DNA from: Haliotis rubra
Lineage: Eukaryota
Length of the DNA stretch: 64,000 nucleotides
Direction: 5' to 3'
NCBI RefSeq assembly: GCF_003918875.1
Contig: NW_025767589.1
Span: forward strand, 186,001 to 250,000
Within the stretch, counting starts at the first letter, position 1. Each line of letters starts with the position of its first letter. A program made the translations under genes and the position numbers. Shown in pieces: positions 12,744-63,600 of this stretch. The notes under the pieces were generated by a model. That model was given only the letters and a program-made list of their open reading frames with translations, made no database searches and had not been told where the DNA came from.

Positions 12744-12947
12744 AAAATATTGCACTGAACAAGACAGCATCAACAACATCTGGATTGTTCGGAGGCTGGC
12801 CCGCATCAAAGGCTGTGGACGGAGACAGTGACATACGTGGTGAGGGTAGAACCTGTTTCCACGCTTTTAGATCTCCGTCAGACTGGACGGTGGATCTGGG
12901 CCGGGACTTCCAGCTGTATGACATCAGGATCTACAGCAGACATAAAT
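12744..12947 (+). CDS. Copy A F-type lectin domain, first exon
   Basis: NIALNKTA...AVDG...CFH...WTVDLG...IRIYSR, the FTP/fucolectin signature; AG/GT bounded. Confidence 0.88.
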
Positions 12948-13276
12948 GTAGGTATCCAGACATCGTGATCTAAGAGAGAACGATGCTATTTAGATTGTTA
13001 TGTATCACCTTAGACTCAACTTACACACATTACTGAAGTCTAGTTTTTCACTATAGTACACCAAACACATGAAAAAGTAACAATTTAGCAATTACGTAAT
13101 TCTTCAACAAGTGTTCTGCTGACACATATCTATCAACCTATGTAAACACTCTGCCACAATGTTCTATACAAGCAATATGTGGTGGTCAATAGAGAGGTGA
13201 ACACCTAGACATGTGCAATAGGCTGGTATTGCTTTATTTGATGAGGCATATAATCATTTTATGCTGGTGATCATTC

Positions 13277-13795
13277 TATATCAATAACAGTGCTACCCCA
13301 TCATACCTCAACGAGTGATACCTAGACGTATTTATATCAATAACAGTGCTACCCCATCATACCTCAACGAGTGATACCTAGACGTATTTATATCAATAAC
13401 AGTGCTACCCCATCATACCTCAACGAGTGATACCTAGACGTATTTATATCAATAACAGTGCTACCCCATCATACCTCAACGAGTGATACCTAGACGTATT
13501 TATATCAATAACAGTGCTACCCCATCATACCTCAACGAGTGATACCTAGACGTATTTATATCAATAACAGTGCTACCCCATCAAACCTCAACGAGTGATA
13601 CCTAGACGTATTTATATCAATAACAGTGCTACCCCATCAAGCAGTTGCCTCAACGAGTGATACCTAGACGTATTTATATCAATAACAGTGCTACCCCATC
13701 AAACCTCAACGAGTGATACCTAGACGTATTTATATCAAAAACAGTGCTACCCCATCATACCTCAACGAGTGATACCTAGACGTATTTATATCAAT
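13277..13795. repeat. 56-bp minisatellite, 9 full units plus a partial
   Basis: Unit tatatcaataacagtgctaccccatcatacctcaacgagtgatacctagacgtatt. One unit has a 6-nt longer variant. Confidence 0.97.
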
Positions 13796-14092
13796 TCTAT
13801 TATTGTTATTCTGTTTTGTAATTGGTTTACATATTGAAAGCAAACAGGACCATTCCGCTCATGTAAGGGAAGTTCAGTAACATAAATAAGGGCTCTCATT
13901 GTTAGAATAACGCATTAATAACTTTGAGACTAAGAATCTTTACTGTTGACTGCATAATCTGGTTCAGTGAGGGAATCACGTATTGAGAGGCGATCTAGTG
14001 CAAACATGTGCATCCAGATGATTCTTGAGCCTCGGTGTGCTGTTACCGTTCGCAAACGAACGAGTTTAGATGTAATTATTCTAAACATATTC

Positions 14093-14333
14093 GACCCGTG
14101 TAGGTCCGGGGTAGAATTGATCTTCAGCAACCCATGCTTGTCGTAAGAGGCGACTAACAGCATCGGGTTGTCAGGCTCGCTGACTTGGTTGACACATGTC
14201 ATCGGTTTTCAATTGCGCAGATCGATGCTCAATCTGTTGATCACTGGATTGTCTGGTCCAGACTCGATTATTTACAGACCGCCGCCATATAGCTGGAATA
14301 TTGCTGAGTGCGGCGTAACCTAAACTCACTCAC
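14093..14333 (+). mobile_element. SINE-like repeat family 2
   Basis: gacccgtg...cccatgcttgtcgtaagaggcgactaa...aactcactcac. TSD tctaaacatattc. Absent in the copy C intron. Confidence 0.9.
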
Positions 14334-14510
14334 TCTAAACATATTCTTATCTAATGCATATATTGTTGGATTGGAAGTGTCACCTCTCAATTACGTCATT
14401 AGTCCGTTGCATGAACATAGTGTTATGATCAGATATATACGCTGACAGCAACTATATTGACACAGTATCATAGTACATCGTAGTCTGAAACAGTATTTGT
14501 TTTACTCAAG

Positions 14511-14711
14511 TCTACGGGAGAAATGCCAACTCCAACATCTATCTGAACAACGACCCCTCCAGCATCTGCTCCACCCTCCCGAGTCCACCAGATACTCCCA
14601 ACCCAACTGACGTGACGTGTAACGGAACCGGCAGATACGTCACCATCAGGAACCCGGGGACAGGGCCTGTACACGATGATTCACTCAACATCTGTGAGGT
14701 GGAGATTTATG
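14511..14711 (+). CDS. Copy A F-type lectin domain, second exon
   Basis: YGRNANSNIYLNND...C...[15 protein letters not shown]...LNICEVEIY. Confidence 0.88.
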
Positions 14712-14746
14712 GTAAGTCATTTACTGTATTTACAAGTAATTGTCAT

Positions 14747-14866
14747 CAAATACTCCCAACCCAACTGACGTGAAGTGTAACGGCACCGGCAGATACGTCA
14801 CCATCAGGAACCCGGGGACAGGAGGATTTAATGATACACTGAACATCTGTGAGGTGGAAATCTATG
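14747..14866 (+). pseudogene. Partial duplicate of the second lectin exon (3' half, variant loop)
   Basis: [38 protein letters not shown] followed by a GT donor; no usable acceptor seen. Confidence 0.85.
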
Positions 14867-16367
14867 GTAAATCATCATTGTATTTACAAGAATTTGTCTA
14901 TTCGTGTCCTGGTGATACAAGTGTTTTTTATTGTCCTTCAACAGCAAAGTCCTTGTTTGCAAGTTACAGAATAAATTCTGAGCATTTGTAAAAATTATCA
15001 ACCATATCTTAGAGTGAGTTGACAGGATGTTTTCATTTATATCAAACTGGATAATTTAAAATGGTTATTTCACTTTGTTGTGTTCAACTTGCATGTTTCA
15101 TAATTTCTATCAGTTCTTTCCCGCTGAATATGTCACTCTTTCATTATCAATAAACTTATATTACATAGTCTTTAACATCTGGACGCATTCTTTTGAACAG
15201 CTGAACTATATTCATAAACGGATGATTAGAATTTCAATAGTTTGAGTAAACAAGGTTTGAAACAGCTATACACTACAATAAGTAACTAAATGGGATCCCA
15301 TATAATATCAATTAAATGCTTCTTGTACCGAATTCAGAAAAGCCATTTAGGATTCTATATTGATATCTTCTATAAACACCTTCTAGTAAAAGACAGGCTG
15401 TGATAGACATGACGCCATTCTAACTTGCCTGTGATGATAAAAACATTTGTTAACGATTGCACTCACTACCCCATAATGCCTAATCACCTACGTTATATAT
15501 CTAAATTCCACAATCCACCCTTCTCTACGTGTCCCTAGCCCTCCAAAATGCCTCTATGGTATATTAGGTTAACAGTCGAAGAAGGGAATGAAATGCCGGC
15601 GGTTCGATCTCCTTGTAGCGTAACATCAACATACGCTTAAATATCGTAAGTATTGTTATTCTGGACAAACAATCACACTCTTTTTTTAAACAGAACCTTA
15701 CACCCAATTATACCCCATATCACCTTTCTCACCCTCTTTCAATGACGTCAACTGTTCCTATTTCCTTATGCCAATGCACCAGCCTGCAGTACAGGTGTCT
15801 ACGGGATGAACTGTAATGTGTTCTGTCACTGCCTTGATTCGACCTGTGATCGCTTGACTGGACTGTGTCCTGGAGACTGTATACCAGGGTGGCAGGGACA
15901 GAGATGTGATAAAGGTGAGACGTTTGTACTGTCAGTATTGATAGCTTCCAGTAAATGATACGGTAGACTTTAGATACGTATACGCGCCAGGGTATACGCG
16001 GCCCATTGTAGACGCTGACGTCAGGTTAGTCATGATAAGTAGGAATGATTACCAAGGGGCAGTCGTTGTGGAGGTCTTACTGTGGGTTAGTTTTCAGGGG
16101 CTTGTAACGTGGTGCATCAACATCACCTACTGACTCGTTTCATACACTTTGCTGAACCGATCACCTAGAATGCTTCACAAATCAGATGCCTTTCAACTTT
16201 ATTTACGAATGAAGATTTTTCTTCTTATCTATATTTTACAGCTTGCAACAGCACGTATGGCACTAACTGCAATAAAACGTGTCCTGGGCGGAAGTGTTCA
16301 GCTTCAAGTTCGTCATGTGACCGTCACACCGAGCCTGTGAGAATATGTCCAGTGCACCTTCTGGGAA

Positions 16368-17129
16368 ATATATATATTTATTACCCACGTGGTCAACGTA
16401 TGGGTAGTTGCATACTAATCTCGTACGTCACACGAGTGTCGTATCGCGTTGACCTGTGTCGTAACGACTTGACCTGAGATTCTAACGATTTCATTGGATA
16501 ACCGATGACCTCTCAATTAGGTCACATTCTGACGTAACAATTTTTTCATTCATAACAAACACGTGGATCCATTCATTCTACAACTAAATGCATTGTGGGA
16601 ATGTAAACATCGCGAACGTTGCCGTGTCGCTGTTTAATTGTGGGTCGAACTGAGACATTATACCCGTCGAAAAACGTAAACGCAATGTTTCCACCAGTGA
16701 TGTTAGCCGAATGAAGCAACTGCAAACCAAGAAACGGGGTGCTACGGAGTAGTTTACTGTACGAGGCTGTACGAGGCGATGACAACTAACATGCATCGTG
16801 ACGTCGGTTACCAAGGCAGTGACGTCATTACAGTGACGTCATGCAAATATTGTACTACAGTACAAAACTCTTCCGCAACCTCTTTATGAAACCGGTTTCG
16901 GTTTGAAACCAAAATATTAACAAAACTACGTTATTTTGTCAATTTAATGCATGTAAGACGTGGGTAATAAATAAAATACCACACTCGGTCTCATTACATA
17001 CGAATTATACGAAACTCGTGACCTTCCTGTGTTATCTGACCTCGCTTTCGCTCGGTCAGATACCATAGGAAGGACACTCGTTTCGTATAATTCGTATGTA
17101 ATGAGACCTCGTGTAGTATTCTCTATATA
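16368..17129. mobile_element. Non-autonomous element with subterminal inverted repeats and a long terminal palindrome
   Basis: tatttattacccacgt (~16375) and acgtgggtaataaata (16958). Imperfect hairpin of about 145 nt at 16975-17120 centred on ctcgctttcgctcg. TA-rich ends. Confidence 0.7.
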
Positions 17130-20100
17130 CCATATGGAAATTCTTGCCATCTTTTTCTCAGAATGTGATGCCAATCATTATGGACCAGACTGTCGTGGCG
17201 TATGCTCCTTCAGACACTGTGCAGGGAACTCTACATGTAACCGAGCAGGGACCTGTGACAGTGGATGTGAGATGGGGTGGACACAGGGTGACTGTACAGG
17301 TAATGTCCTTATAGTATTGCTACTGTTATGTAAGGTATATATCTGAGTGGCATAACCCATGTAAAGCTCTTTACTAACTGAATTGTGGCATTTAATAAAT
17401 CGAGTTGAAAGGACACTGGCATAGAATCCAGTGGACTAAAGAGCACAAGGTAAAGATTTCAATATTTCACATGTTGTTATTTTGTTATGTGCTAAGGTAT
17501 AAGACATTTGATGCCATGTCAATTGAATGTTATATGCTGAATGAATTCACATTGATATAATAGTTCAGTTACATTGTTATTGTCTCTCTATGAATCATCC
17601 TGGGGTATAACATTTCTCCCTTGTAAAGATGTAACTGTTGTGTGCTCAATCTCCCTCTTCCTTTGCGTGAAGCATGCCAGAGTGGGAAGTACGGTTCTAA
17701 CTGCAGCATGTCTTGTGATTCACGTCATTGTGAAACTGCACCAGTTTCCTGCGACCACGTGACTGGAGCCTGCGCTGCCGGTTGTCGGGAAGGATGGATT
17801 GGAGCAGACTGTACTCAGAGTAATGTTTCCTAAAACTCTTATTTAAAATAATATGTCTGGTGATGTGATGTTGACAGAAATGTTCACAGCCCCAGCTCTC
17901 AAATGATTTAAAATATATTTCAAGCTGACCTTTGAGCCAATTGCAGTGGAAGGTACAATGTTCGATGTGAGTGCAGTGGTGTATGGAGTGCTACAAGGAT
18001 ATGTGTCAGGGCCGTTTTTACACAATCTCTCTGTGAGTTTTAAGGTAAAGCTTTTAAAGACGCACCCGAGCTTTACTGCCATGATACGCAGATGCTGCTT
18101 AAGGATGTCTGTAACATCTGTCTTCGTGATTCAACCCTGCAGGTTTGCGTACTGGTCGAGCTTTGCTCATGACACGCTGCGGCTCGATTTTCGATAGTGG
18201 TCGCTTTTATTGCCTCGAATACATGCAAACGGACACGACGCTTAGAAGACTGCACTACTGCAATACTTATTACGCAAATTGGTATAGTTGATACCTAAAT
18301 AAAGCCAGGCTCAATGTCAACGTTCTGGCATATGGAATCTCTGCCTATATGGCACTGGTGTATGGTTATCGAAAAAAAAAGGTGTCCGAAATATGTGCAA
18401 TGACCATTCGTTTTGGAAGTATGTACACAAGCTGAAAGCGCCATTGTTGGGTTTTCCAGAGCTGTAAAGGACCCTGGAATCTTTATGGATTTAAGGGAAC
18501 ATCATACGGCCATATCTGTGCAGAGTGTGATATTTTCATACTTCAATCAGAAATACCGACCATAGCTGGCACTTATTAACTAATGAAGCAAAATATTATC
18601 TTGTGAGATCACATATTGAAAACTAACAACTTGTTAGCATTTCAATCATGTGATAATGGCCTTTTCGCCATTGGCAGCAGGCAGCACTCATGCTAATGGT
18701 GGACATTGTAGTTTTCGGTATTGAATCATGTCCACTGGCACTGCTGTCTGATTTCTGATGTGTCATCTTTCACAAGGGGTTCATATGATGTATCAGTGCG
18801 AATTCAGTTGAAGAGCTACAGAAGATTTGTTAAGACATGTCATAATTCAAACATATTTCAATTTCCTTCTTAATATTATCATTTCATCATTTAATACCTG
18901 ACCTTCAGGATGCAAACCTGGAACTTATGGGCCTGACTGTACTCGTTGTGGGCACTGTGACGTCACGTGCAATGTTGGAGATGGACGCTGTCCCGGAGAG
19001 TGTCTGGACGGCTTCACTGGTGACCGATGTGATGAAGATGTTCGGGGTCTTAATAAAAATATTGTTTTAGATCAGCTTTAACATTGATATTTAGTATGCA
19101 TTGAATCTTTGAAAACATGGGCGATATTCACAAATTTTAGTCATATTGTATCTGGGACATACATGTATTCACAAAATAATGTTTCAGCTCATGTTAATTT
19201 ACATTGGCGTTTGATATCAGATTCAGTGTCTCCTGTTACAAGATTCAGCTTCCCTATTACAAAGCGGAGTTATTGGAGGAGCAGTAGTGCTTGTTGTAAT
19301 GCTGTTGCTGATTGGTGGATTGGTGATATGTTTGCTGAAATCTGGAAGGTAACTTTGAGAAGGCGACCAAAAGTGGTGCACTTGTGCCTAATCCCTTTGC
19401 GTTTTGAACAATAAAATATGTTTTAAAATAAACGTTGAAAACAGTATGAAGCAGGTGTTAAAATAATGTGTACATGTATATTGCTCTTAACTCTAAATAC
19501 CAACTGCGAAAGGTACATGTACAGCGGAAATATTTCTGTCACTGGATCAATGTGTATTCAGCCCCCTGTGGAGTATACAACCCAAGATGGGCTGTCAGGC
19601 TCTAAAATGTTATAACTGTCACCTGTCCTATATCTTTTAAACACAACTTAAATTGTTTCCAGACTGGCACAGGTGTGAAATGGGTACTCCTGAACACACC
19701 TGGCACAGGTGTGAGGAAGGCAGACACGTCTGGAACAAATGAGCAAGACTACACCGAACTGAATGAAGTCACCAGGGAGAGAGAGGAGAAGTCACAGTAT
19801 GATGTCATTCAGAACAAAGTGTATGGAAACAACCAAATCTGAGTTGAGAGCAGTGCATCCTTTTCGTATGTGCTATGACATACCTTTAATGTTCACATAA
19901 CTGAATATGTTCTGCCCAGAGGACAAGTCTGGAATAGTGTATATGGTTATACCATGTGAGTGAGTGAGTGAGTGAGTAGGTTAAAAGTTTACAGTTTTAT
20001 AGCGATGAAAACAAGGTAATCAATGTAAAACACCTGTCAACGATGGACAGTAAAACAACTAGATTATCATAGATATATATTTATAACTAGTACTTAAATC

Positions 20101-20923
20101 TAAAATACTTTAACTATATACATATACAGGCTGTAGATCGCCGACAACTGAAGGTAGATCACCATACTAGGGACGGTTATACCATTAAGATATCCAACCT
20201 GAAATATAGTATGAAAACCTTTTTAGTTCGTATTAGGTAGTTTGTACATATGATACGTGTTAATGATTTGTTATTATTATATTGTTATATCTGTTGTTAT
20301 TTTTGTATGTTATGTCACTACTGAACAATACAAATAGTTCTGAATTGCATGATCACTACATTTTCTATATTTTATGCATTGAAGCTAATTTGCTTTACTG
20401 TACCTTGGATGGGATGTTGCAGACAAAAGTTAAAATGACAAATAACCCATGTTGTGTGTTACCTCTTTCGGATCAGTTCATGACATATACCATTTCTGGT
20501 GTCATTAAGTAATAACACTGAAATCATGACCACCGATCTTGGCAAATGTGGTACTATCCGAATACTGCAAAACAACTATGAAATATCAAATCGGCTTTGC
20601 TCATGTTTTTGTTTTCATGTATTTCACCACCTAAGTAATATTTCACTTTTTCGTTTTATTGCATTTTAAAAATGTATCTGTATGTGATTAATTTGTATAA
20701 CCCATGTTGTGTCTGACGTAAATTGTAAACAGAATAAAATTTACCAACAAAGTATTTGTAATTATCCACTGTTTCCTGACGTAACACATTCTAGTTATCA
20801 ACAACAGGTGGGTGGCCTTTCGCACATCTAAGACTTTGGACTATTTTGTTCTTAACTGAGAAAAGTTACTTTGTTGGTGTTGAGAACAATGGGAATTGTC
20901 ACAAATACGTTCAACTTCTATAC

Positions 20924-21093
20924 GGGGCGGTGGGGTAGCCTAGTGGTTAAAGCGTTGGCTCGTCACGCCGAAGACCCGGGTTCGAATCCACACATGGGTA
21001 CAATGTGTGAAGCCCATTTCTGGTGTCCCCCCGCCGTGATATTGCTGGAATGTTGCTAAAAGCGGCGTAAAACCAAACTCAGTCAGTCAGTCA
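20924..21093 (+). mobile_element. tRNA-derived SINE family 1
   Basis: A box (tagcctagtgg), B box (ggttcgaatcc), (tcag)n tail. Near-identical to 49024-49193. Confidence 0.9.
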
Positions 21094-21279
21094 TCTTATA
21101 TACATATCATAGTCATTGTGGGACTCTGATGTCCTAAAGTTTGGACTGACCTTAGAGGAATGGTCATTCCTAACTTCTGTGTGAACATATGTTTGTGAGA
21201 GGTGAATTGTTTGATAGAGATCTTCAGAAGTTGCGTAATGACAAAATAGTAATAGTCATTGCATAGACTATAAGTTCTT

Positions 21280-21448
21280 TGAGTGAGTGAGTGAGTTTGG
21301 CTTTACGCCGCTTTTAGCAATATTCCAGCAATATCACAGCGGAGAACACCAGAAATGGGCTTCACACATTGTACCCATGTAGGGATTCGAACCCGAGTCC
21401 TCGGCATGACGAGCGGACGCTTTTACCACTAGGCTACCCCACCGCCCC
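21280..21448 (-). mobile_element. tRNA-derived SINE family 1
   Basis: Reverse complement of the 20924 element; TSD aagttctttga. Confidence 0.9.
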
Positions 21449-21534
21449 ACAAGTTCTTTGATATCCCTCGGGCGATCCTTATAAGGGTATTAGGATAGAT
21501 ACCAAAACGTCGCCATTTGGTATTTAAAGAATTT

Positions 21535-21708
21535 NNNNNNNNNNNNNNNNNNNNNNNNNNNNNNNNNNNNNNNNNNNNNNNNNNNNNNNNNNNNNNNNNN
21601 NNNNNNNNNNNNNNNNNNNNNNNNNNNNNNNNNNNNNNNNNNNNNNNNNNNNNNNNNNNNNNNNNNNNNNNNNNNNNNNNNNNNNNNNNNNNNNNNNNNN
21701 NNNNNNNN
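21535..21708. other. Assembly gap
   Basis: Run of N. Confidence 1.
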
Positions 21709-22839
21709 TCTATATTTATATAATCTTTGACTTCATTGCATGGATACACAGAGACATCATTGCCGGGCGCCACTCAGGGTCAGTGAATTTATCTGGGTTA
21801 TCTTTTATCTCTTCCTCTGGAAATGTAACCCTGACTTTCTCTTTTAAGCTACCAATACACAAATACATGCATGTCTGTAACGTGTTTATGTGCAAAGAGC
21901 AAGGGCACTAAACTTGCAAGAGAAGTAGAAAATACACTGCTTTTGCATCTTTTTCTTTTCGAACCGGATGTCAGTAAGCTGGAAGTAATAGAAACATGTT
22001 ACCAAACATTTAATTACCAGAGTCAGTATATCCATCTGTAGCGTTACTTTCTTAAAGCGGATTTGACTGAAAGTGAGTTTAGCGGAAAACGGAAAGATAT
22101 AACCTTCTTGTGAATATACAGCAGCAGCGCAAACGAATACCCGATACTGACTATTACAGATTCCATATTGTGTAAAGGCTAACAGAGCTGGGTAAATTAA
22201 GAACGGACCACCAGGTGATGACACAAGGTGTTAGCAAAAGGTGAACATGTCCAGTCATAGGTTTCCCTGTCCAACAGGTTTCATGTCACTGTAAGGCTTG
22301 TCATTTCAGTGATATATTCAAGGCCTGAATGCAAATAGCCCAGGTTTCTGTGTAATATCAAGGTAACTGCAATCTGAGCGGCGCTCACTGTTGTATGAAA
22401 AGTACTTGTAGGAGTACAAGGCCTATTCACTATCGAAAATAACATAAGTAGACCATGTGTATGGACTGGTTGAGTGCCCCACACGGCAAACAATATCAAC
22501 ACTCGGAGGAGAACTCATGAACCACAGGAAGTGTACAATGTCATTCAATGAGGTGGTTAAATGAAACATAAGGGATTACACTTTCTCAGAAAAGTACAGG
22601 TTTTAGTGTTTTTTAACGGTGAATCTACAGAGATTCGAACCCACACTCCCCAAGTAATGCAATCTAACTCACTCAGCCACAGCAATCTCCACAAAAAACA
22701 ATATGTCGTGTTTAATGAAAGTAACAAGTAATACAGTACATTCAATTTAAATACGCCACGGCATACATAACATCAAAATAGATATACAGTATTCTGTTAC
22801 GAGATTGTGTAAATACTATTTCTAAGGCCTCATTGATTC

Positions 22840-23175
22840 GTTGTCATGGTTGGCCGCTCTTGATCTAGATGGAAGCTACCCTGTAAACAGTGTTGGGCTG
22901 TCAGCCTTACAACGGGACCGTGAGTCACATGCATGTGTAGGAGGAAAAGTAGTGAGTGTGACCTCAGCATTGATCAAAGCCCTGCGTCTCACTATATCTC
23001 CGCATAGAACAATTCTCCTGGAGTCCCTCTGCCTAGTCCAGGGCTGAAACATCGTCATGGCTGACCATGTGACCCAGATGGAAGCTACCCTGCAAGCTCT
23101 GTTGGGACTCAACCTTACAACGGGTCAGTGAGTCACATGCGTGCATGGGAGGAGAATGTAGTGAGTGCGAGCTGT
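22840..23175. repeat. Tandem duplication (about 120-bp module, twice) upstream of copy B, each with TGAGTCA
   Basis: agatggaagctaccctg...ccttacaacggg...gtgagtcacatgc...gtagtgagtg occurs twice; one homologous module lies upstream of copy C (57065-57450). Confidence 0.75.
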
Positions 23176-23560: not shown

Positions 23561-26500
23561 ATGGCGGGTGTCAGAATATTCGTTGTGGTGGTCTTACTTC
23601 GATGGATACAGCTGACATCGGGTGCGTACATCAGCCGATTGTCTTACGTCGAAGTATACGTACCTTCCTCGCGGATGTGTACATCACTACAAATAATCTA
23701 TTGTGTATATATATACTGAGACGAGCATGTTGCATACACGTTTGACAAAACTTGTTTTGCAAGTGTTATATATAGCAGAACCCGTCCACTATTTGCGTGT
23801 GCATCTCAGCTAACGGGACAATACCAATAAACGTGTTAGAATCCTTGAGTATAACTCACTGTTGTGTGAAGCGTTTGCTTTGTACAAAGCTTAAAAAATG
23901 TTATTGCAGTCGAGAGGAAAGAGCAAAATGAAAACGGATTATCCCAACTTCAGTATATTACATATGGAAGGAAAAGGTTGTATTTCTAATCTGTTATAAA
24001 CTTCGCGTATAAGTCACTGTTGTGTGAAGTGTGTGCTTAAAAGCTTAAAAGATAAAACTGGAGTCGAGAGGAAAGAGCAAGATGTACATGGATTATACGA
24101 TGAGACTAATGAATCGTTTTCACTAGGATATTCTATTAACCTTTCCAAACAATTAACTTCACAGCAATAAATATTCATCCGTGCATTTTACCAACTGACA
24201 ACCCTCTATATATTATACAAGGAAGAAAAAGGTTGCGTGTTCGTCATAAATAATCTACTGTCAAAAACTAGAGCAATTACTTCTTGTGTATTTCTAATCT
24301 GTACCTTGAACTACAAATTAATGTAAATATATCACAAGTTGTACATGTGAGTTTGCACATGATGTCAAAAATAAATCCTCATTTCAGTCGTCGTCAAACA
24401 TGACCTTTGCCTACGTTTCGGCCCTGTCATACATAACTCGACCTTTAGTCATCCGAATACAGAGGTGAAGTCATCAATATTGAGGCCATGTCATCTACAG
24501 CACAGTGCATCTATGCATCTAAACATTGTCTTTTCATCCATACAACAGGACGTCATTATCCACTATCCTCTTGACCGGCCGTCAGTAAACGCGTAGAAAC
24601 CAATTTAACCGTAATCGATTTCAGTTTGTTTATTTCGATATTTGCAAGTTATATTAGAAGTCAAGGAGGGCTATCATGGAATCCTGACATTCTGCTATAC
24701 TTACCCTGTGGTCCTGTCACCTCTACCTCAAGGTACCCTCCAAGGCATAATCCGGGTGTCTTGCTATCCACAATATCCCACTTTCCTTTCTCAAGTCCAT
24801 ATCATTCTTACTGTGCAATTATGTGATTCCTATCCCGTGGTCCTCTGTCAATCCTACCCTCGGGTCCTTTCATCCCTCCCCAGAGTTCTGTCAAGCTCTC
24901 ATCCCAACCACTGTCAACCCTTCTCTGGGGTCGCGTCACCCCTACCCCCACGGTTCTCTTATCCCTTCCAAGGATCCCTGTTTTCATTCCAGTCCCTGAT
25001 AGTCCTACTTTTGGGGTCCTGCCATCACTACCTGACGGTTCTGCTATCCTTCCAAAGGGTCACTGTGTTCTCTTTCCGTGTCCTTCCTAGTCTTGTGTCC
25101 TAACCCTACACTATCAGTAGGGCATTTCATTTCTATTTCGTGACATTGGCAATCCTTACCCATGATGGCATCATCCCTGCCATGGAGTTATCCTTGCCTC
25201 AAGTAACATCATCCCATTCATATCACACATTTCATCATCTAAAACCCAGATGCCAGTCACCGATACATCTGAACATGTATAATTCATGTTTAGTGTCCCG
25301 TCATCAAAGGCCCAGGGCCCATTCATCTGCATCCGAAGTTAAGTCACTGTTTAGCACTGCCCACACTTCCCATGGATGTCCATTAGCAAACTGTCCCGCT
25401 TCAGGAAGTGCTATGTATGCAGGATATATGATAACATTGACCGTTCAGTGCAGTATGTCCGTTCCATAAGACATAATGCAATATACCATTACTATTACCT
25501 GTAAATAAGCATGATGTGGTGTTTGGTATGAATGTTTGTGAGGTAAACATATACTCTAATACCATGTTGTTGAAGCAACAGTTGTGAAACCATGTCACGT
25601 GAAGAAACAGTTTTCATCGTTTCAGTCTCTGTTAAAGTTCAAGGGATACTGAGAGTGTAGCTGTCCTTCCTCATCCACCTCCCTCTGAATGCCCCCGGTG
25701 TATGGTCCAAAGTTGAACACATTAAGGAGTAACATATGTTGTATTTGGGATTACACTTTCTTAGTAAAGTACAGATTCTAGTACTTTTGTTGAGTCCCAC
25801 CGCCAGCACACAAAGTCAGACACCTAGACCGCTCAGCCACCGCGGCTTCCACGAAAATGGAAGTCGGACAAATGGTAGTCTAGACTGCGGACTTGTGCAC
25901 CCCTCTGATAAGTGTTAATTGGCACGCGTACGGCTCCCACGGCCGAAAGCTATGATATACACAATGCCATTTAGAAAGTGGTCTAATGTAACATATGTTA
26001 TATATTTCGGATTACACTTTCTTAGTAAAGTACAGATTCTAGTACTTTTGTTGGGTCTAGAACATGGAGAAAAACCAAGCAAATCTTGTGTCAATGAATT
26101 GATTAAATATGTCTATTTCAATCTTGTAAGAAATGATGGCACTGTAATAAATACGCAAAGTGACATTCTAGAAGAAACAAATGGGTTTTATAAAAAAATG
26201 TTTTTCTAGTGAAGATTGCACAGAATTGATCAAGAGAATCTGTTTTCCGATACAGACGTTCCAAGATTATCTCCTAAGGAATCCAATCTAGAAGGTACAA
26301 TAACGTATGAAGAATGTCTTACGGCATTGAAAAATGAAAAAATCCCCAGGACCTGATGATTCACTGCTGAATTTTAAAAATTCTTTTGGAATGATCTAAA
26401 TATATATATTTGATTACTCCCTGAACTATGCACATGAGCATGGGTCCTTATCTGTAACCCAGAAACAAGGATTAATCACATGTTTGCCTGAAGCCAATAA

Positions 26501-31760: not shown

Positions 31761-31791
<31 letters not shown>

Positions 31792-52256: not shown

Positions 52257-54775
52257 CTTGGCGAAATGTTTTACCCACATCTCACAAAGATGTTATCAAT
52301 GAGAAAATCCAACATTTCACAAACTGTTGTTTTGGGCAAACTTCAAATGACATTTGTTTTCAGTTTTGACAAGTTGTTGTTTACTAAGTTTTGTCTCGGG
52401 TTTGTCATAGTGGAATACAACGTTGAATCATCAAACGTTTTAACAGAACGGAACTCGGTTCGTTTCTGAGAGTGTACAAATGTCAGCGAATCCTTTGAGT
52501 TAGTTGAGAATCCACATGGTGTTAATTCCGCTTGTCTCAAATACTTTTTGTGAAACCAGTGTTCGTTGTTTCGTATATTGCTTGACTATTAACTGGTGTG
52601 TGTCGATTTATGAGCCCACTTATGAGCCCAGTTATTATAGATAATACTGACACTGTATGACCGCCAAATTATCAATAAAGAAACACGCAGCTCACTGTTG
52701 TTTATTATAATGTCAAATAGAAAGGCCAGTCCTTCATTTGATTTCTTCATGAAGGTGAAAAGAAACAAGAAAGCTATAGATGACATCAATTCTACAAGAA
52801 GAACATGAAAGAAATGGTAAGGCATCAAGACGGGTGAAGATGTCCTACAATGTATCTAATCGATGTATGCTACTAGGTACAAGAAAAATGGTTTGAAGAC
52901 GTATGTTTGATTGTCTTTATCTCTTCTTCAAATCACAAGATTTGAACATTTGGCGTTAAGTAATAAGGTAAATATCGGATTTGAATGATTAAAACATTAT
53001 CATCGTATGGCGAAAGCGTAATGCTGCGACGTTGTAGCATAAATATTTATTCAATCATTTTGTCGGTGCTGTGGAGTATTTTCTCGTTATTTCGATTATT
53101 TTCTCGTTACTTTGAATGCTTTCTCGTTACTTGGAGTTTCTTTAAAAACTTTGAAATATCAAGTATTTTCTCGTTGCTTCAATGAATTTTTCGTTCCAAA
53201 TTTCTTACAACCACTCCAGATTTCAAGTTTTTGAAACAACTTTAAAGTAACGATAAAATAGTGGAAGCAACGAGGAAATACTCGAAATATTATGTGTTTG
53301 ACAGAAACTCCAAGTGACGAGAAAATACTCGAAGGAATGAGAAACAACTCGAAGAAATATTTGACACAACGAGATTACATTCCCAAGCACCGACACAATG
53401 ATCGAAGCAACGGTGAAACAAATTATTTTTATGCTACAAAAGTGGCAGCATTAAGCTTTCTGATACCTGAAACAAGATGCCACGTCTTTTACAAACAAAT
53501 ATATGCTTTAACCAAACAGGCATGCTGGTATCGTATATACTAATACATAACAGAAATTTAACTGGTTTGAAAAGCCAAGAGCTGAGAGAGTCACCATATC
53601 ACTTTAAATCCGACAGTGTTTATCTATTACACGAATTTACAACAACCCTCCAATGAGGCTAGAAGTTTCAAATACGGGCTGACAATATAAAGTGTTATCC
53701 GTTGCTGACAGTTTACGTCTATAGCTGATACAGACTTTCAAATGACACTGGGGCAGTAAAATGTGTAATGAATTAGAAAGTGGCGTGTTCCACACTATGT
53801 GTATTGAAGTGAATGCGACGACAGCCACAATCTTGAATTATGACATGGCAGGCACAAACTTATGATGTGGCATGCAAATGTCTAATTAGATGCACTTTTA
53901 TATGAGGAAGGCTTCCTCGTTGAAGGTCGTGAACTCCCCCAACAATGTGAATGGTATGATTGCTTGACAACTTTATCTCTCATACACATGCTCAGCATAA
54001 TGCAATATGCACTGTAGAAAACAGGGACGACATATAGCATAACTGACTGTCAAAGGCGGCTTCATTGGTTTTCTAATTCTATAGGCAACACAAACGGAAT
54101 TATGCATGACCACTGAGGAACATTATTGACTGACTTTATGACTATATCGTTCAGTAAAGGGTGTGTAGCACGGACCTGACAATCAATATTTGCTTTACAC
54201 ACCATAAACTGGTGTTCAGATAGATGTAATACTATTCTATAAATACAAGCACATGTCATTGTTAGCTGCTTCCAACCTCTCGGGCCAAGTCTCACCAAAC
54301 ACAGACCAAAAACTTTTGAAAGAGTCCACGTTAGGAATGCACAAAAATGACTTCACTTTATGATGTACCAGTGATCTTTAAATGCAGTGTACTGTGACAT
54401 TAAAAAGCAGCATCTAGGTAGATATACTATTGTAGAGACTTAAACGAAATCCATGATATAAATTTAAGACGTTTAAGACCGTTAAGTCGAACCAACACTT
54501 GTGCCGAAGAGACAACGCTGAGAGTGTTGAAAATTGACTTTGAACACTCTTCGACTCAAGTTTGCTTCAAATAGATCTACTTCAATTTGTGTCAATGATA
54601 AAAAAGATAAAAACTATTCTACAGATTTATACAGTTTCGACGAATCATCTGCGAAACATGAAAATGCGATTCACAATGGTATATGTACGTTTAAAATCCT
54701 CTTTCTCACGGAACTGGGTTCAGTCTATTTTCTCGCCATAGCGTTATTGTGCTGCACGCATGTTGTTTGTGATTG
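52257..54775. repeat. Segmental duplication block upstream of copy C (partner 427-1748 plus 9002-10160)
   Basis: Colinear match lacking the Tc1+LINE insertion. Confidence 0.9.
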
Positions 54776-57150
54776 CAAATTAATGTCATATGTGTACAAA
54801 TGCATGTTGCATTAGTAAAATGGAGGAATGTTTCTCGATAATAGAGAAATTTACCAATAATATTCGTAAGACGGGCTTGGTGCAGTTCGGCCCATGGTTT
54901 ATGCACTTTGATGTCAGTAATTCCTCTTGGTACCCGGTGTTTAAAGAACCGTTGTAGTTTTAGATACAAAGATAGTAGATATATATTTAGATAGATATAT
55001 TACATACTCCGTGAGTATACAAGACAGTTGTGTAAATATCTCTGTGCAAAAAGCGTTGTTGATTAGCCTTTTACATTGTTTCTGGTATGTACTCTCTGGC
55101 CAAAGCTGTTACTTACCATTCGTGTCCCAGGAATATCGAAGAGGAGTTTAGTGGGAGGAATAGGATATGTTTCTAACATTTATCAGTAATATTGACACCT
55201 GAAACGAATACATATTAACATGTTCTTTGACCAGAATGTATCTGAAGATGGAATATGTTTTGAATGTCTAAACTTGTTATGAAGTCGATATTCAGTAAAC
55301 GGGTTTGCAAACCAAAAATAAATCACAGAACTCAACATCATCTTTAACTTTAGATTAGAAAGGGTTCAGATGTTAAACCAAAACACTTCTGAAGCCACGC
55401 TTAGGACGTTCATCTAAGATAAAGGCACTCATAACTACATTCATTTGAGCTAGTCAAAACATGTAGAACATCATTAATGGCTTTCAACATGGTTCATGTT
55501 GAAAGCTGACATTTTGCAATCCCCTGTTTTCACGTGCATGCCGTGTTCAGGGGAACTCTTCAATTACCTTTGAAGGACACCCCAACAGCTGGTATATTCA
55601 CTATTTGTTTGCATCTCATAAACAGTAATGGTTATGATTTTGTCAGGCTGGTATTGTACTGAGGTTGCTGGTCCATGTACAATACACTAATATGAAATCG
55701 CGTTGTATGTGAATAAGGTTATCTTAAATACATTCGTTTACATGTAGAGTATATTTTTTCCAATTACATCTTCTTTCTTTGTTCTTTCACATAGTTGTCT
55801 ATGTGTTTCAATGGGATAGTAGGGATATTTCAGATCCCATACTAACATTTTCGAAATATGGCACAAAGCTTGTTGGAAAGGACAGTCAGCTCATATGGTT
55901 GCATTATAGAAAAAAATAATCGAAATTTAGAAAATATACAATTCGTTGAAATAAGGAAATACTGAATAGCCTTCTTTTGGATAGCCTTAGCATGTGTCCA
56001 GTTGAGAAAAAAAAATGCCACATTTAAACGAGGGAAAATTCGCACAAGAACTTCAATATGTTGTCTTTGTATTTCAAAAGGTAGCAGAATAATGATTGCA
56101 TTATGATTTCTGTATAACAAAGGCATCTTTTCGGTTCCATTTGAAATGGTTCGTCCACTGTTCGCCCACAACTTTAATGCAACATCGAAACACCTGAAAA
56201 CTGTTATCATACAGAAAGGTGCGTCTATTGACAGTTTAGTCTATCCCATGACGAACAAGCTGAATCAGTTGACGGACAAACGAATTTGGTTATATCTATT
56301 CATACATACATTCCTGCGACAGGTGATCTGTGGCTGAGTAATTTCCATTTTTGACTGGTTTTAGAAATGTATTTCCATCCATGTGGCGCCTACCATATTT
56401 GAAATGTAAAGCAAGTCCATTTATATTACAAAAGATAAAACCATGTACATGTAGAACTATCATCTGAGTATCGATGAAACACCTCCACAGATCATTCGTT
56501 CAATGCAGCCTCGTAACGAAAGATATTTCCAACTGAGATTCGAACAAATAATATATGTTCCAAAAGTTTTGTCCTGGTTCATAGATATTGATGGTTTTTT
56601 GTTCAGTTTATTTCCGATGATTATAGATGCTTCTTGTGAGATAGCTAGAGACATTGCAACTTCTGTTTTACTAATATTCTGTATAGGATGTGACTCTTTT
56701 GATTCAATAGTAATGGTCACGTGTTCCTCTCAAGTGCTATCTGCAGACTGCAAGTCCTGTGGAACTTTTTTAGCCTCTTATCTAAAAAATACATTAATGT
56801 TACAATAATTAATTATCTGGTATCACGAATCAGAAAAGACTTCCCTGTTTTTGAGTTGGCATATAGCAAACGATATCAAAACACACAGAGGAAATAACAA
56901 CTGAACCAGAGGATACAAGACATGCGTGAAAATACGCCATACATAATTATAAAAGATACGTAGTATTCTGAAACGAACGCATGTCGATAATGTTAAAGAA
57001 AGTAGAAGTTATAAAGAATAATTCAAGCCCTCGCTGATAAGTCGTCAGATCTGACCTGACCCGATCAAGATGGAAGCAACCCTGATACCATCTGCGATGT
57101 TGACCTTAGGACGGATCCGTGAGTCACATGCATACGTAGGATGAGAATGT

Positions 57151-57428
57151 GAGTGAGTGAGTGAGTGAGTTTAGTTTTTATGCCGCACTCAGCAATATTC
57201 CAGCTATATGGCGGCGGTCTGTAAATAATCGAGTCTGGACCAGACAATCCAGTGGTCAACAGCATGAGCATCGATCTGCGCAATTGGGAACCGATAACAT
57301 GTGTCAACCAAGTCAGCGAGCCTGACCACCCGATCCCGTTAGTCGCCTCTTACGACAAGCATAGTCGCCTTTTATGGCAAGCACATGGGTTGCTGAAGAT
57401 CTATTCTACCCCGGCATCTTCACGGGTC
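57151..57428 (-). mobile_element. SINE-like repeat family 2
   Basis: TSD aggatgagaatgt; (gagt)n tail. Confidence 0.9.
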
Positions 57429-59067
57429 AGGATGAGAATGTAGTGAGTGCGAGCTGTTCATACTCGACTCAACTGTTCTACATTGTACCCTTAGATTGAT
57501 CAAAGTTGTAGCTGTGTGTCTTTCTCTTCTAAGAGCTAATATCTCATGAAATCCTTCTGAAAAGCATGTACGTGTTTCTGAGGAATTGTGACCGGGACAA
57601 CAAAGGTGAAAGCTGATCACCCACGATCTTATCGAGTGTTTTGAAACGACTGTGAAAACCTGCTGTCAATACCCAGCGTCGCTATTGACTAAAGTCGCCC
57701 TTTATAACAGATGAATACGCGTAGAATTACACGTAGAGTAGACTTAACCGTTAGCACAGTTTGACTGGGTATTTCACTTCCTGGTTGCTCAACATGGCGG
57801 GTGTCAGGATATTCGTTGTAGTGGTCTTACTTCGATGGATACAGTTGGCATCATGTGAGTAGATCAACTTGGTTAATTACTACGAGACGTTTTCCTCCCG
57901 ACCGCTCACAGCACTACTCCGGGGGTCCCTACCACCCAGTTCTGTTATCCCTTCCAAAGCAACCCTGTATTCTCCAATCACCGTGTTCAATCATCCCTAA
58001 CCAGTTATTTTATCACCACTACTCAAGGGATGTATCAAATCCGCCCGAGCCTTGTCATCTCAGCCCCAAACCAACCTTTCTGCCATACTTAACCCCGGGT
58101 CCAGTCATTTCTAGATCTGGATTCTGTCAATTCTACCCAAAGCCCTATTACCCCTTTTCTTGCTCATCTTATCCCTACTTTGGGAACCCAACCTAAGCGT
58201 GATTATACCGCTAAGGTGTGGTCCTATCATCAACGTCCCCAGATCACTTTGTCCTTACCTCAGCTCATAACACCCCTAACCTGCTGCCCAGTTATTCCTA
58301 TCCAAATTTCATAACACCCCGGGCTTGTGGCTCTGTCCTGCCTACTCCTGGGTCTTGTCCCTATCCTATACCATGGGCATTGCAGTTCTATTTCGGGGTC
58401 CTGTCATCCCACATCCCGGATCACATGAGGTAAACATGCACTTGTACTAATGGTTCGCTTACCCGAGGGATGCTGCAAATGTAGCTCTCTTTCCTCATCA
58501 ACAGCCAACTGAAGCTGAATTTCTCCTCGATATTTGATCAAATCTTGAACACATCAAAGAGGTACAATGGGTGGGGTTAATGCATATTCAGTGTTGAAAC
58601 GTCTAAGTTGTAGGCATTTCACTTTCTTGTTTAGGGTATTGGGATAGCATCGCTATTGCTGTAAGTTGGGTGATAAAATGACTCAATGTTTGATGATATA
58701 CAAATCAGGCAAAGGATAAAGCTAATAGCTAACATCTGAAGGGTTACCGTAAATCTAGCCAGGGTCCATGCAGGAAGCAAAAGTACTGTAAGTAGCCAGT
58801 ATGGTGATCTACCTTCAGTTGTTGGCAATCTATAGCTTGTTTTTATATTGTCGTGTCATGTATAGTTAAACTATCTAGATTTGATTACTAGTTTTATATT
58901 TATATCTGTGATAATCTAGTTGTTTTACTGTCCTTCGTTGACAGATTTTTATAATTTACCTTTAATTATTATTAATCTATAACTTGATTTAGTCACGATA
59001 TGGCTGAAATATTGCCAAAGTGACTTTAAATTTTAACTCACTCACTCATTTCATATTGTCTTGTCAT

Positions 59068-59372
59068 ATGAGGTGAGGTGAAATTGGGTTTAGCATCGTG
59101 CTCATATGACGACTTGCATGCGTGTGTATGTGTATGTGCGGCTGCTTGTACTAGTCCAGGCTGAAGCTGGTTTTATAGTGCGAGCCCACTGAGATACCAT
59201 GCCGCAGTTAAGCAAGAATACCCCACACAGACACATTATACTGACTCCGCGCCGACCTGTCCTTGATGTACCCATTAATGCCGAGCGCCAGGCAGGGACC
59301 AACAAGTGCCATATTTTAACGACGCGGTCGGGGATCGAACCACGCTCTAACCACTACACCACGGAGGCGGTC
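59068..59372 (-). mobile_element. tRNA-derived SINE family 3
   Basis: Minus-strand A/B boxes (gtgtagtgg, ggttcgatccc). TSD tcttgtcat. Empty site in copy A near 11691. Confidence 0.8.
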
Positions 59373-59583
59373 TCTTGTCATGTGAAGTTAAAATGGTTTA
59401 AATGTAATTACTAGTCTTAAAATATATATCTGTGATAATCTAGTTGTTTTCCTGTCTTTAGTTGACAGGTTTTTATGATTTACTTTTAATTATTTTAATT
59501 CTATAATTTGATTTAGTCATAATATGGTTTAAATATAGAGGATGTGACTTAAACCCTTAACTCACTCACTCACACAAGTTGAT

Positions 59584-59823
59584 ACCCGTGAAGATCCGGG
59601 TTAGAATTGGTCTTCAGTAACCCATGCTTGTCGTAAGAGGCGACTCAGGTGGTCAGGCTCGCTGACTTACTTGACACATGTCATCGTATCCCAATTGTGT
59701 AGATCGATGTCCATGCTGTTGATGACTGGATAGTGTGGTCATGACTCGATAATGTACAGACCGCGACGATATAGCTGAAATAATGTTCAATGCGGCGTTA
59801 CACAACAAACCAACCAGCCACTG
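59584..59823 (+). mobile_element. SINE-like repeat family 2 (older copy)
   Basis: Same core; TSD aagttgat; empty site in copy A near 11901. Confidence 0.85.
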
Positions 59824-60656
59824 AAGTTGATGATAAACGGACGCTCAATCGTCAGAGACTAGAACTTTGTATTTGAATATCACACCTCTGTATCTCCCTA
59901 CAGGTTCCTGTCAACCAGGAAGATTTGGAGACTCCTGTAGCTACTCCTGTCACTGCGGGACATCATGTGACGAGACTACAGGTGCCTGTTCTGGTTCTTG
60001 TGATCCGGGATGGAGAAAGGAAGGGGGTCTTTGCCAGAAACGTGAGTGACATATATATTTAATGCTTTCCTATGGCTGTGTTGAATATCCTGCTCTGGTC
60101 GGTGTGAAAACAGCCTCTTGTTACGAATCATTATGAATTGCATGATGATCCCTTAACACCGTATAAAATATTTGTAATACAACAGATAGGTTGTAGGGTT
60201 GTGGCTGACATAAAAATATGAACTAGGATCTCCCCATAACTAAACTGTCACTATACATGTAAACGTAACCTTTTCACCATTACCTCATACTGGTATGTGT
60301 ATGGATTTTATGAGGGCATGCGTATTGTCCACAGAAGAAGACAGCATCAACAACATCTGTAGTGTGTGGAGACTGGTACCCGTCAGACTATAGATGGGGC
60401 AGTGACGTTACATGATTATTGTACTTTACAGAAAATATTGCACTGAACAAGAGCATCAACAACATCTGGAGTGTACACAGACTGGTACCCGTCAAAGGCT
60501 GTGGTTGGAGACAGTGACATAAAGGGTGAGGGTAAAACCTGTTTCCACGCTGCTGGATCTCCGTCAGACTGGACAGTGGATCTGGGCCGGGACTTCCAGC
60601 TGTATGACATCAGGATCTACAGTAGAAGCCCACGTAGGTATCCAGGCATCGGGAAC

Positions 60657-60692
<36 letters not shown>

Positions 60693-60698
60693 TATATA
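60657..60698. repeat. (TA)n microsatellite
   Basis: Direct observation; absent in copy A. Confidence 0.9.
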
Positions 60699-63600
60699 CA
60701 ATTGAATTATTCACAACGGCGCTCCAAGAAAGAACGATGCTATTTAGATTGTTATGTATCACCTTAGACTCACCTTAGACACTCTGCTGAAGTCTAGTTC
60801 ATCATTACAGTAATCAAACACATGAAAAAGTAACTTCACAAACCAACACCATGTGAGCAATTACGTAATCTTTTAACAAATGTTCTGCTGACAACATATA
60901 TATCAACCTATTTAAACACTCCACCTCAAGGTTCTATACAACAACTATGTGGTGAACAAAATAGAGACGGACACTCAGATATGTGCAAGTGGCTGGTATT
61001 GCTCTATCTGACGAGGGATATGTTCCTTATACGCTGGTGATCAACCTATAGCAATAACAGTGCTGTCTGATTACCTAATATACCTCAACGAGTGAAAACT
61101 AGACTTAGTTATAGCTATTCTGTTATATAAGTGATTTACATATTGAAAGAAAACATGGCCATTCCGCTGATGTAAGGGAACTTATAACAATAACAGCAGT
61201 AGTGGCTCTTATTGTTAGAATAACGTATTAACAAATTTGATGCTAAGAATTTTTACTGTTGACTGTATAATCTGGTTCAGTGCATAACATGTGCATCCAG
61301 ATGATTCTTGAGCTTCAGTGTGATGTTTCTGTTTGCAAATGAACGAGTTTTTATGTAATTATTCCAAACATCTTCTGCTCTAATGCATATATTGTTTGAC
61401 TGGATGCCACCTCTCAATTACGTCATTAGTCCATTGCATGAACATAGTTTTGTGATCTGATAATGAAGCTGACACAGTATTATAGTGTAACGTAGTCTGA
61501 AACAGTATATGTTTTACTCAAGTCTACTGGAGAAATGCCAACTCCAACATCTATCTGAACAACGACACCTCCAACATCTGCTCCACCCTCCCGAGTCCAC
61601 CAGATACCCCCAACCCAACTGACGTGACGTGTAACGGTACCGGCAGATACGTCACCATCAGGAACCCGGGAACTGGAGGAAGCGATGGCTATGCTAGTGC
61701 ACTGAACATCTGTGAGGTGGAGATCTATGGTAAGTCATTTATTGTATTTACAACTGATTCTCCATTCGTGTGCTAATGATACACATGTGTTTCTTTGTAC
61801 TTTCACAGCAATATCCGAGGTTTTGTAAGGTTTGTGTCCGAATTTTCTCTCAGCATTTAAGAAGCATTATCAAACACTGTGAAAGTGTGACAGTGTTGAC
61901 TGGGCATATCCATTTCGGTATAAGTGGCTAACGGGAGTGGGTATACTGACGCGTCCGTTTCTAGTCGACAAAATGCATTAATAGCTAACGTGACGGATGT
62001 CATAATATACTTGCAATAAAGCAATAATAATGTTATGGAATGAGTTAATGCTTTTGGTATCTGGCGAGACAAGGCTAATTCAGTATTCTGTATCAGGATC
62101 TTGTTAAGACACCTTGTCGTTAAGAAGTCTATATAAGGTACATATTATTTGAAATAAACAGCAGATGTTAATACTGAACAATTATCTAGGTTTTCCGGTA
62201 GGTTCAGCCATCTGGTTCACTGTTTTGTTAGTCGCTGCATTCTTCACAAGAGATAGATTTCGAGTGATGGATGCAGGCGGTAAAAGTAGGATATGCTTAC
62301 CCCTTTCACCTATATCTGATGTCATCACTGATCTTCGGAGGTTTATGTAGTGTTTTGAAATTGTGAGTGTCAATTTCCATTTTGCCCTAATGGAGTCTGT
62401 TTCGTCTGATGATCGAGACTGTTTAATATTCTCTGGAGCTGACTATTTGACAAAATCCACATGTTTTCAACATTTGCATTACCAAACAGACAGACATGAC
62501 TCCATTCTCCCATTATGTTTTATATATGATTATCTATTTGGATGTCACGTTGACAATTGCTAATTTGTTTATGGAAACTCTGGTTCTGGTTCTGTAGAAT
62601 GATGCACTTGACCATTTAGCGCCACCCATTCAGTAACATATCTAGACTGTATCTTTAAGGCTAAACATGGTGTTGTTTCTTGAGCATCAATGCGTCAATT
62701 ATCTGATTGCGAATAAAAACCCATTGTTTTCATATTCCTTTTGTCCAATAGCTGTGAAGCACATTGCACAAAAACTTGACAAATGGCAGTGACTATGATA
62801 TGAACTACGTTGCATTTGTTGGTATTATTATTGAGAAATATTGATGGGCAAAATACTGAAAATGGCGGATGATAGTCGTGACATACTGAAGATAGAACCA
62901 TAACTGTAACAAATCAAATAAGTAAAAGTAGTATAATGTTCATCCATTCGATATATCCACAATTTCCATTCTTGTCTTTATGTACTTATCTTCTCTTAAT
63001 AATGCACCAGCTTGCAGCCTAGGAATCTATGGAGCAATGTGCAATACGTTCTGTCACTGCCTGAATTCAACATGTGCTCGCTTGACTGGATTATGTCCTG
63101 GAGACTGTAGACCAGGGTGGCAGGGTCAGAGATGTGATACAGGTGAGACGTTTGTACTGTCAGGATAGGTGGGTTCCAGTCAGTGGTACTGGAGAGTGTA
63201 GATACGTATACGGGCCAAGGTATACTCGCCCAATTGTTGACTGTGACTTCAGGTTAGTCATAATTGATGCGAGGGAATAACAAGACTCACTTTGGCCTCG
63301 TTTCTAGGGGAATGTTAAGTGGTGGATCGACATCACCGCAGAACTCGTTTCACACACTTACCTGGGAAGCTTTAAAACACTAATGTTACTTTCCTTTATC
63401 TTCACCAATCACCTCTTAATCCACTGTAACAGCATCAACCTTGCCTTTTGAATCTTACCCCAGCTTTGTATATCATTAGATTATCAGCCACCCTTCTGTA
63501 CACCAATTAGACTCGTTGGCTTCTATCACTTACCAACTTAATCCACTGTAACACACCATATCTGCTTTTGTATATTATATTCACTTTCATCTTACAATCC

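Follow-up and report, generated by a model that had tools for sequence, protein, structure and literature searches.

The closest described relatives of the system analysed here are secreted lectins of oysters and fishes. The sperm bindin of Crassostrea gigas is a secreted acrosomal protein in which 1–5 tandem F-type lectin repeats are encoded within one gene (Moy et al., 2008, according to the review PMC5712786), and its repeats have a GA microsatellite upstream and a CT microsatellite downstream (PMC5712786). The eel fucolectins (Anguilla anguilla, 1K12; A. japonica, eFL-1 to eFL-7) are soluble serum proteins which vary mainly in two of the loops that resemble complementarity-determining regions (CDR1 and CDR2) and in which CDR4 is strictly conserved, and the FBP32 protein of striped bass is soluble and has two lectin domains. 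We analysed 64,000 nucleotides of the abalone Haliotis rubra (assembly GCF_003918875.1, contig NW_025767589.1, positions 186,001 to 250,000, forward strand; this whole stretch is called the window below). An earlier note had described in it three F-type lectin domains, A, B and C, with a nearly invariant framework and divergent sugar-binding loops, and had proposed diversifying selection on ligand specificity. We consider it probable that these domains are the heads of receptors encoded in a tandem array which evolves by birth and death, with the loops on the pocket face under diversifying selection and the two halves of the domain shuffled between copies. Loop-focused diversifying selection is known for secreted F-lectins (oyster bindin, eel fucolectins) and apparently unreported for this abalone receptor family, for which database protein annotations exist and literature searches returned no paper.

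The abalone domain resembles oyster bindin in its length (about 134 residues), in positive selection at a few sites around the sugar pocket, in a mid-domain intron of variable size where recombination appears to mix the halves, and in the occurrence of copies without the triad histidine. It differs in its context: there is one domain per gene, it belongs to a membrane receptor with an EGF stalk and a tail that is either phosphatase or similar to an immunoreceptor tyrosine-based activation motif (ITAM-like), and the host is a gastropod rather than a bivalve. With the eel fucolectins it shares the fold (template-modelling (TM) score 0.80 to 1K12), the basic triad, the calcium motif, both disulfides and the concentration of isoform variability in CDR loops around the pocket. 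Unlike in the eel proteins, however, the abalone CDR4 is hypervariable, one residue shorter and without the Asp and Cys-Cys; the domain also has a longer last loop and a CDR1 that is reduced by 4 residues. The best sequence match is the C-terminal domain of FBP32 (3CQO), which has the same shortened R-x5-R CDR4 without a Cys-Cys bridge and an aromatic residue, Phe220, that aligns with F, Y or L at column 68 of our alignment; the intron inside CDR4 sets the abalone genes apart from it.

Three receptor genes in tandem

Gene models were obtained by tblastn of Haliotis family proteins onto the window. The closest proteins are receptor-type proteins of Haliotis with a single lectin domain each; in a search of the whole library the nearest relatives of the first lectin exon of gene B were H. 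rubra proteins, and a word search found further family members in H. rufescens, H. asinina and H. cracherodii. The three genes, all on the same strand, are made up as follows.

10475–19839, + strand: gene A, short form, from family-protein mapping
10475–10537, + strand: gene A signal peptide
about 11950–12118, + strand: gene A EGF exon just ahead of the lectin domain; 5 bp deleted near 12047
12744–12947, + strand: gene A lectin exon 1 (CDR1–3 and first half of CDR4), AG/GT borders, translation as in the earlier note
14511–14711, + strand: gene A lectin exon 2 (second half of CDR4 and last loop, TGPVHDDS)
14744–14898, + strand: partial tandem duplicate of the 3' half of gene A lectin exon 2 (155 bp) with the last-loop variant TGGFNDT, without acceptor and out of frame with exon 2
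15782–19054, + strand: five gene A EGF exons after the lectin domain
19675–19839, + strand: gene A last exon, ending YTEL-x12-YDVI
23561–49683, + strand: gene B, long form, intact, from family-protein mapping
23561–23626, + strand: gene B signal peptide
30875–31093, + strand: gene B EGF exon
31345–31548, + strand: gene B lectin exon 1
36874–37080, + strand: gene B lectin exon 2, preceded by a 5.3-kb mid-domain intron
38188–39554, + strand: gene B EGF stalk
40488–41214, + strand: gene B juxtamembrane region
41649–44356, + strand: gene B tyrosine phosphatase, one classical domain with intact catalytic loops
46232–49683, + strand: gene B conserved C-terminal exons
57794–64000, + strand: gene C, 5' part, running off the window, from family-protein mapping
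57794–57853, + strand: gene C signal peptide
59888–60046, + strand: gene C EGF exon
60432–60633, + strand: gene C lectin exon 1, with a 2-bp deletion after 60451
61523–61729, + strand: gene C lectin exon 2
63010–63141 and 63718–63852, + strand: gene C EGF stalk exons

Domains A, B and C thus belong to three separate Haliotis receptor genes that follow one another in tandem, with one lectin domain in each, and are not free lectins or bindin-like repeats. Genes A and B each comprise a signal peptide, an EGF module, one F-type lectin domain, an EGF stalk, and exons for a predicted membrane span and for the tail, and gene C is seen up to its EGF stalk. The gene A tail carries the pattern YxxL-x11-12-YxxI (more fully, YxEL-x11-12-YDVI), which recurs in four proteins of three other Haliotis species; its spacer is longer than that of the canonical ITAM (YxxL/I-x6-8-YxxL/I), and we hence call it only ITAM-like. 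Gene B encodes a classical phosphatase, with the loops WPDHGVP and VHC|SAGIGRTG (HCxxGxxR) spread over the exons at 43498–43641 and from 43952 onward, and the Pfam family Y_phosphatase scores 267 bits on the relative P0116. A stop-transfer sequence, RRRRGK, lies at 40488 in gene B, and P0116 has a clear hydrophobic span (residues 458–478), whose place in the window is approximate. The C-terminal 250 residues past the phosphatase (46232–49683) are 95–100% identical to those of an H. rubra relative, far above the conservation of the ectodomain, and match no Pfam family.

Two exons, both phase 1-1 and both with AG/GT borders, encode each lectin domain. For comparison we assembled 13 complete units from four abalone genomes for which DNA was available, the three of the window and 10 from loci of H. 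rubra, H. asinina and H. cracherodii, with H. rufescens left out. In all 13 the mid-domain intron splits codon 68, inside CDR4 and between the two arginines of the triad (R-x-x-|x-Y-x-R). A six-frame motif search recovered the framework strings of the earlier note, including NANSxIYLNND, and all five of its loop sets on the + strand exactly as written. The loop strings of C, however, come from the frame that follows the 2-bp deletion past 60451 and not from the frame set by the acceptor; relative to A and B, this exon lacks two bases, and it runs into a stop when read from the acceptor. With this exon frameshifted, and with the EGF exon ahead of the gene A lectin domain short of 5 bp near 12047, gene B is the only intact gene of the three in this assembly, and A, B and C are not comparable live paralogs.

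Evidence for expression comes from assembled contigs of public sequencing runs (Logan), the RNA nature of one run being a guess. Contigs of this run join 60626–60628 straight to 61523–61524, as none do in the DNA runs; at the CDR4 codons the RNA-type contigs show eight or more distinct short fillers, and their loose ends run into EGF exons on both sides. Such spliced contigs with diverse fillers indicate that several family members are transcribed and spliced as modelled (EGF, exon 1, exon 2, EGF). Every contig of the same run that spans 60451 has the AC that copy C lacks, and the DNA runs hold both forms; because paralogs are mixed in these conserved exons, the contigs speak neither for nor against the 2-bp deletion.

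Another H. rubra contig, QXJH01001590.1, is syntenic with the window at 91–95% identity in non-coding DNA; it may be a divergent haplotype or a paralogous segment, or may come from a close relative. An orphan last-loop piece analogous to that beside exon 2 of gene A lies on it at 53763–53870, and exon 2 is frameshifted in the unit of this contig that matches gene B. In the public model XP_046562318, which concerns 53763–53870 and 52957–53148 of this contig, exon 1 of one unit is followed by exon 2 taken from another unit, 38 kb distant, and after that by an orphan last-loop copy further downstream. It is probably a chimeric prediction, and it raises the question of whether orphan last-loop cassettes may sometimes be spliced in.

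Probable selection on the pocket-face loops

The exons of the window were searched singly, with database relatives standing in for the whole domain, and were joined only for the codon alignment. A profile of the Haliotis family matches 3CQO (E=3.7e-20) and 1K12 (5.9e-5), as well as pneumococcal fucose modules and lectinolysin, and a wider and deeper profile raises these matches to 1.9e-87 and 1.2e-40, respectively. The Pfam family F5_F8_type_C_2 is above cut-off on full family proteins and below it on single window exons. An AlphaFold model of residues 66–205 of P0116, which are 83% identical to the window B domain, was built from a 76-sequence alignment and has a mean local confidence (pLDDT) of 92.3 and a global score (pTM) of 0.89. 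The top 11 Foldseek neighbours of this model are all F-type lectin domains, among them lectinolysin, 1K12, 3CQO and fucose-binding modules of S. pneumoniae (TM 0.77–0.82). By profile and by predicted fold, this is a true F-type lectin domain, as the earlier note had recognised.

In F-type lectins a His/Arg/Arg triad binds the 4-OH of fucose. The corresponding residues H39, R65 and R71, which align to H52, R79 and R86 of eel agglutinin, are present in A, B and C; both arginines are invariant in the 13 units and the histidine is replaced by Val in one H. asinina unit. Four cysteines are likewise invariant and align to C50, C146, C108 and C124 of eel agglutinin, which form both structural disulfides. 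The calcium motif (h2DGx) reads AVDGD/A in A and B. In C a Val stands in place of its Asp (AVVG), a position at which the other 12 units have Asp (11 units) or Asn (one unit).

The loops of the pocket face were defined before variability was viewed, from the secondary structure of the model and the topology of the barrel, whose termini lie at the bottom (PMC5712786). They comprise 43 columns of the alignment: 12–19 (CDR1), 27–35 (CDR2), 40–44 (after the triad His), 65–72 (CDR4) and 116–128 (last loop). Of 136 aligned residues 39 vary among A, B and C, and 27 of these fall within the predefined loops (hypergeometric p=6.5e-9), which bears out the proposal of a nearly invariant framework with variation focused on the loops. 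Alignment to eel agglutinin and FBP32 also places the variable patches, as had been claimed, in loops around the sugar pocket.

The ratio of non-synonymous to synonymous divergence (dN/dS, Nei–Gojobori) across the family is 0.73 in the pocket loops, compared with 0.38 in other loops and 0.21 in strands; for pairs within the window the loop ratio is 1.15–1.45, and the scaffold ratio (omega) of the A–C pair is 0.11–0.17. In four independent close pairs the proportion of synonymous differences (pS) is equal in the loops (0.088) and in the rest of the domain (0.091), whereas that of non-synonymous differences (pN) is 0.152 in the loops and 0.041 elsewhere (2x2 p=0.005), which gives pN/pS of 1.73 and 0.45, respectively. 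In codon site models run with each half of the domain on its own tree, model M2a was preferred over M1a for exon 1, with a likelihood-ratio test (LRT) statistic of 41.5 and omega of 4.2 at 16% of sites, and for exon 2, with an LRT of 30.5 and omega of 5.9 at 7% of sites; the LRT was 0–3.1 in 8 data sets simulated under M1a. The sites with posterior above 0.8 are columns 14, 15, 16, 17, 19, 31, 34, 41, 66, 67, 95, 118 and 121, and 12 of these 13 are inside the predefined loops (Fisher p=3e-6). In eel agglutinin, column 14 corresponds to the methyl-pocket Leu23, columns 31 and 34 flank Phe45/Tyr46, column 41 is two residues past His52, and columns 66–67 correspond to Gly80/Asp81. These results support the view that purifying selection holds the scaffold and that a minority of loop sites evolves at more than the neutral rate.

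The two halves of the domain appear to have different histories. Trees of exon 1 and exon 2 conflict, with the H. asinina unit asi_L5c joined to different partners at support of 100 and 83, and, among A, B and C, the two halves disagree over which copy stands apart from the others (p=0.02), copy C having a mosaic pattern. Recombination or gene conversion at or close to the mid-domain intron would account for this conflict, and such exchange has been described for bindin. BLAST blocks in the introns are 72–87% identical, suggesting more divergence than the scaffold dS of 0.10–0.19, and the counts are too small for exon-limited conversion to be claimed from them.

Explanations for the loop variation

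Under the interpretation that we favour, the locus is a tandem array of predicted single-pass abalone receptors, each with one F-type lectin head on its ectodomain and a tail that is either short and ITAM-like (gene A) or a tyrosine phosphatase (gene B). Selection would act on the specificity for glycan ligands, and exchange at the mid-domain intron would give the paralogs new combinations of loops. The array itself would turn over by birth and death, with A and C as copies that have suffered recent frame-breaking deletions and whose scaffolds still bear the mark of purifying selection.

Several observations weigh against this interpretation or limit it. The earlier proposal of diversifying selection stands in so far as the site models find omega of 4–6 at 7–16% of sites, but it does not extend to the loops taken whole, which do not exceed 1 to a significant degree (0.73 across the family, 1.15–1.45 for pairs within the window; binomial p=0.12 for the close pairs). 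The codon-likelihood code was written in-house and was checked by the 8 null simulations only. The trees are poorly resolved, and on six alternative trees the LRT ranged from 25 to 88, wrong trees raising it. The main caveat is recombination between and within the halves, which may inflate site-model tests that assume one tree. The loops are assigned to the pocket face by alignment and strand topology rather than by three-dimensional distances, and the one selected site outside the predefined loops, column 95, lies in the 90–99 loop, for which topology alone suggests a position on the top face. Nor is fucose binding assured, since the strict motif of H-x24-R-x-D-x4-R/K with a contiguous Cys-Cys is replaced here by H-x25-R-x5-R without the Asp and without Cys-Cys. 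Finally, copies A and C are both broken in this assembly.

Some of these points would be expected if constraint had simply been relaxed, such that the loops tolerate change, two of the copies are decaying pseudogenes, and the selection signal is an artefact of recombination and multi-nucleotide changes. The family-wide loop ratio below one, the frame-breaking deletions in A and C with the additional loss of the calcium-motif Asp in C, and the conflict between half-domain trees, given that mis-specified trees inflate the LRT, can all be read in this way. However, relaxation does not readily yield omega of 4–6 in the selected class, with an LRT of 25–41 on the best-fitting trees against at most 3.1 in data simulated under M1a, or a loop pN/pS of 1.73 in low-divergence pairs whose pS equals that of the scaffold. 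The scaffold omega of 0.11–0.17 between A and C further indicates that these two copies diverged while under constraint. On these three grounds we regard pure relaxation as unlikely, though it is the strongest of the alternatives.

A raised local mutation rate, or patchy gene conversion from diverged donors, might also have written the loops without functional selection. Multi-nucleotide differences do cluster in the loops, the apparent dS across the family is higher there (0.52 versus 0.30), copy C has a mosaic pattern, and exon 2 of gene A has an orphan last-loop segment next to it. Yet synonymous divergence in the close pairs is the same in the loops (0.088) as elsewhere (0.091), so that the raised loop dS at larger distances looks like saturation or path-averaging and a local mutation hotspot becomes improbable, and conversion alone leaves the excess of non-synonymous change unexplained. 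We give this alternative little credence.

That A, B and C are instead repeats of a single oyster-bindin-like gene, combined by alternative splicing, is excluded for practical purposes: the repeat size of 134–136 residues, the phase 1-1 of all exons, the mid-domain intron and a retrotransposon upstream of the first unit (3168–7888), an arrangement like that described for the C. gigas bindin genes (PMC5712786), would suit it, but each domain is preceded by signal-peptide and EGF exons of its own; further downstream, separate stalk, membrane and tail exons follow in A and in B, and separate EGF stalk exons in C; Haliotis receptors with a single lectin domain are the nearest proteins; and neither a GA, AG, CT or TC run of at least 12 bp nor a purine or pyrimidine tract of at least 25 bp occurs in the window.

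Opposite tails and the surroundings of the array

Ectodomains that are nearly identical are joined to an ITAM-like tail in one gene and to a phosphatase in another, which suggests that these recognition receptors form activating and inhibitory pairs, and this pairing of tail types makes non-self glycans the most plausible guess for the class of ligand. Paired immune receptors are well known in vertebrates, where KIR, Ly49, Siglec-5/14 and PILR are examples. The abalone locus is similar to these in its tandem arrangement, in near-identical ectodomains on tails of putatively opposite signalling type, in fast-evolving predicted ligand-binding surfaces, in likely gene conversion and in the frequency of pseudogenes. 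The folds, however, are unrelated, the ITAM-like spacer is 11–12 residues rather than 6–8, and the putative inhibitory arm in abalone would be a covalently attached phosphatase and not an immunoreceptor tyrosine-based inhibitory motif (ITIM). We suggest, as a tentative possibility, that this is a germline-encoded paired-receptor system in which one fast-evolving F-lectin head is placed on an ITAM-like or a phosphatase tail and is diversified by positive selection and by reshuffling of half-domain exons at the intron within the CDR4 binding loop, an invertebrate and lectin-based counterpart of KIR, Ly49 and the Siglecs.

A selection pattern known from secreted lectins is found here on tandem signalling receptors with opposite tail types, and it points to a repertoire of glycan-recognition receptors in a gastropod of commercial importance, on which disease takes a heavy toll. 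Should the loops determine ligand specificity, they would be candidate markers for disease resistance or for mate or self recognition, they would offer a natural series of loop variants on one scaffold from which to learn how F-lectins encode specificity, and the family would be a test case for an independent paired-receptor logic in molluscs.

The window is eukaryotic DNA with a G+C content of about 40% and contains two runs of N, at 10278–10421 and 21535–21708. The second is an assembly gap:

21535–21708, no strand: assembly gap, intergenic, between the last exon of gene A (ending at 19839) and the signal-peptide exon of gene B (23561), touching no lectin exon

The flanks of this gap (21054–21475 and 21709–22311) are colinear on one H. 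rubra contig, in the same orientation and at about 94% identity, and the gap has no effect on the lectin-loop finding.

Upstream of gene A lies a broken non-LTR retrotransposon, a long interspersed nuclear element (LINE; 3168–7888, + strand) with several open reading frames that match endonuclease, reverse transcriptase and, weakly, RNase H; the segment around it (426–1748 and 9065–10175) is otherwise duplicated upstream of gene C (52257–54789). The mid-domain intron of gene A contains a 56-bp tandem repeat (13277–13795; 9.2 copies, 95% match), and lectin exon 1 of this gene is bracketed by an inverted pair of elements of about 180 bp (12492–12675 and 14094–14278) that resemble short interspersed nuclear elements, with further copies near genes B and C (27395–27580, 57218–57362 and 59584–59801). 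Remnants of Tc1/mariner-type (DDE_3) transposases occur at 32146–34577 (− strand), where they account for much of the 5.3-kb mid-domain intron of gene B, and at 47369–47893 (+ strand). A 170-bp repeat forms an inverted pair just before the assembly gap (20924–21093 and 21280–21450) and is present in a third copy among the last introns of gene B (49022–49192).

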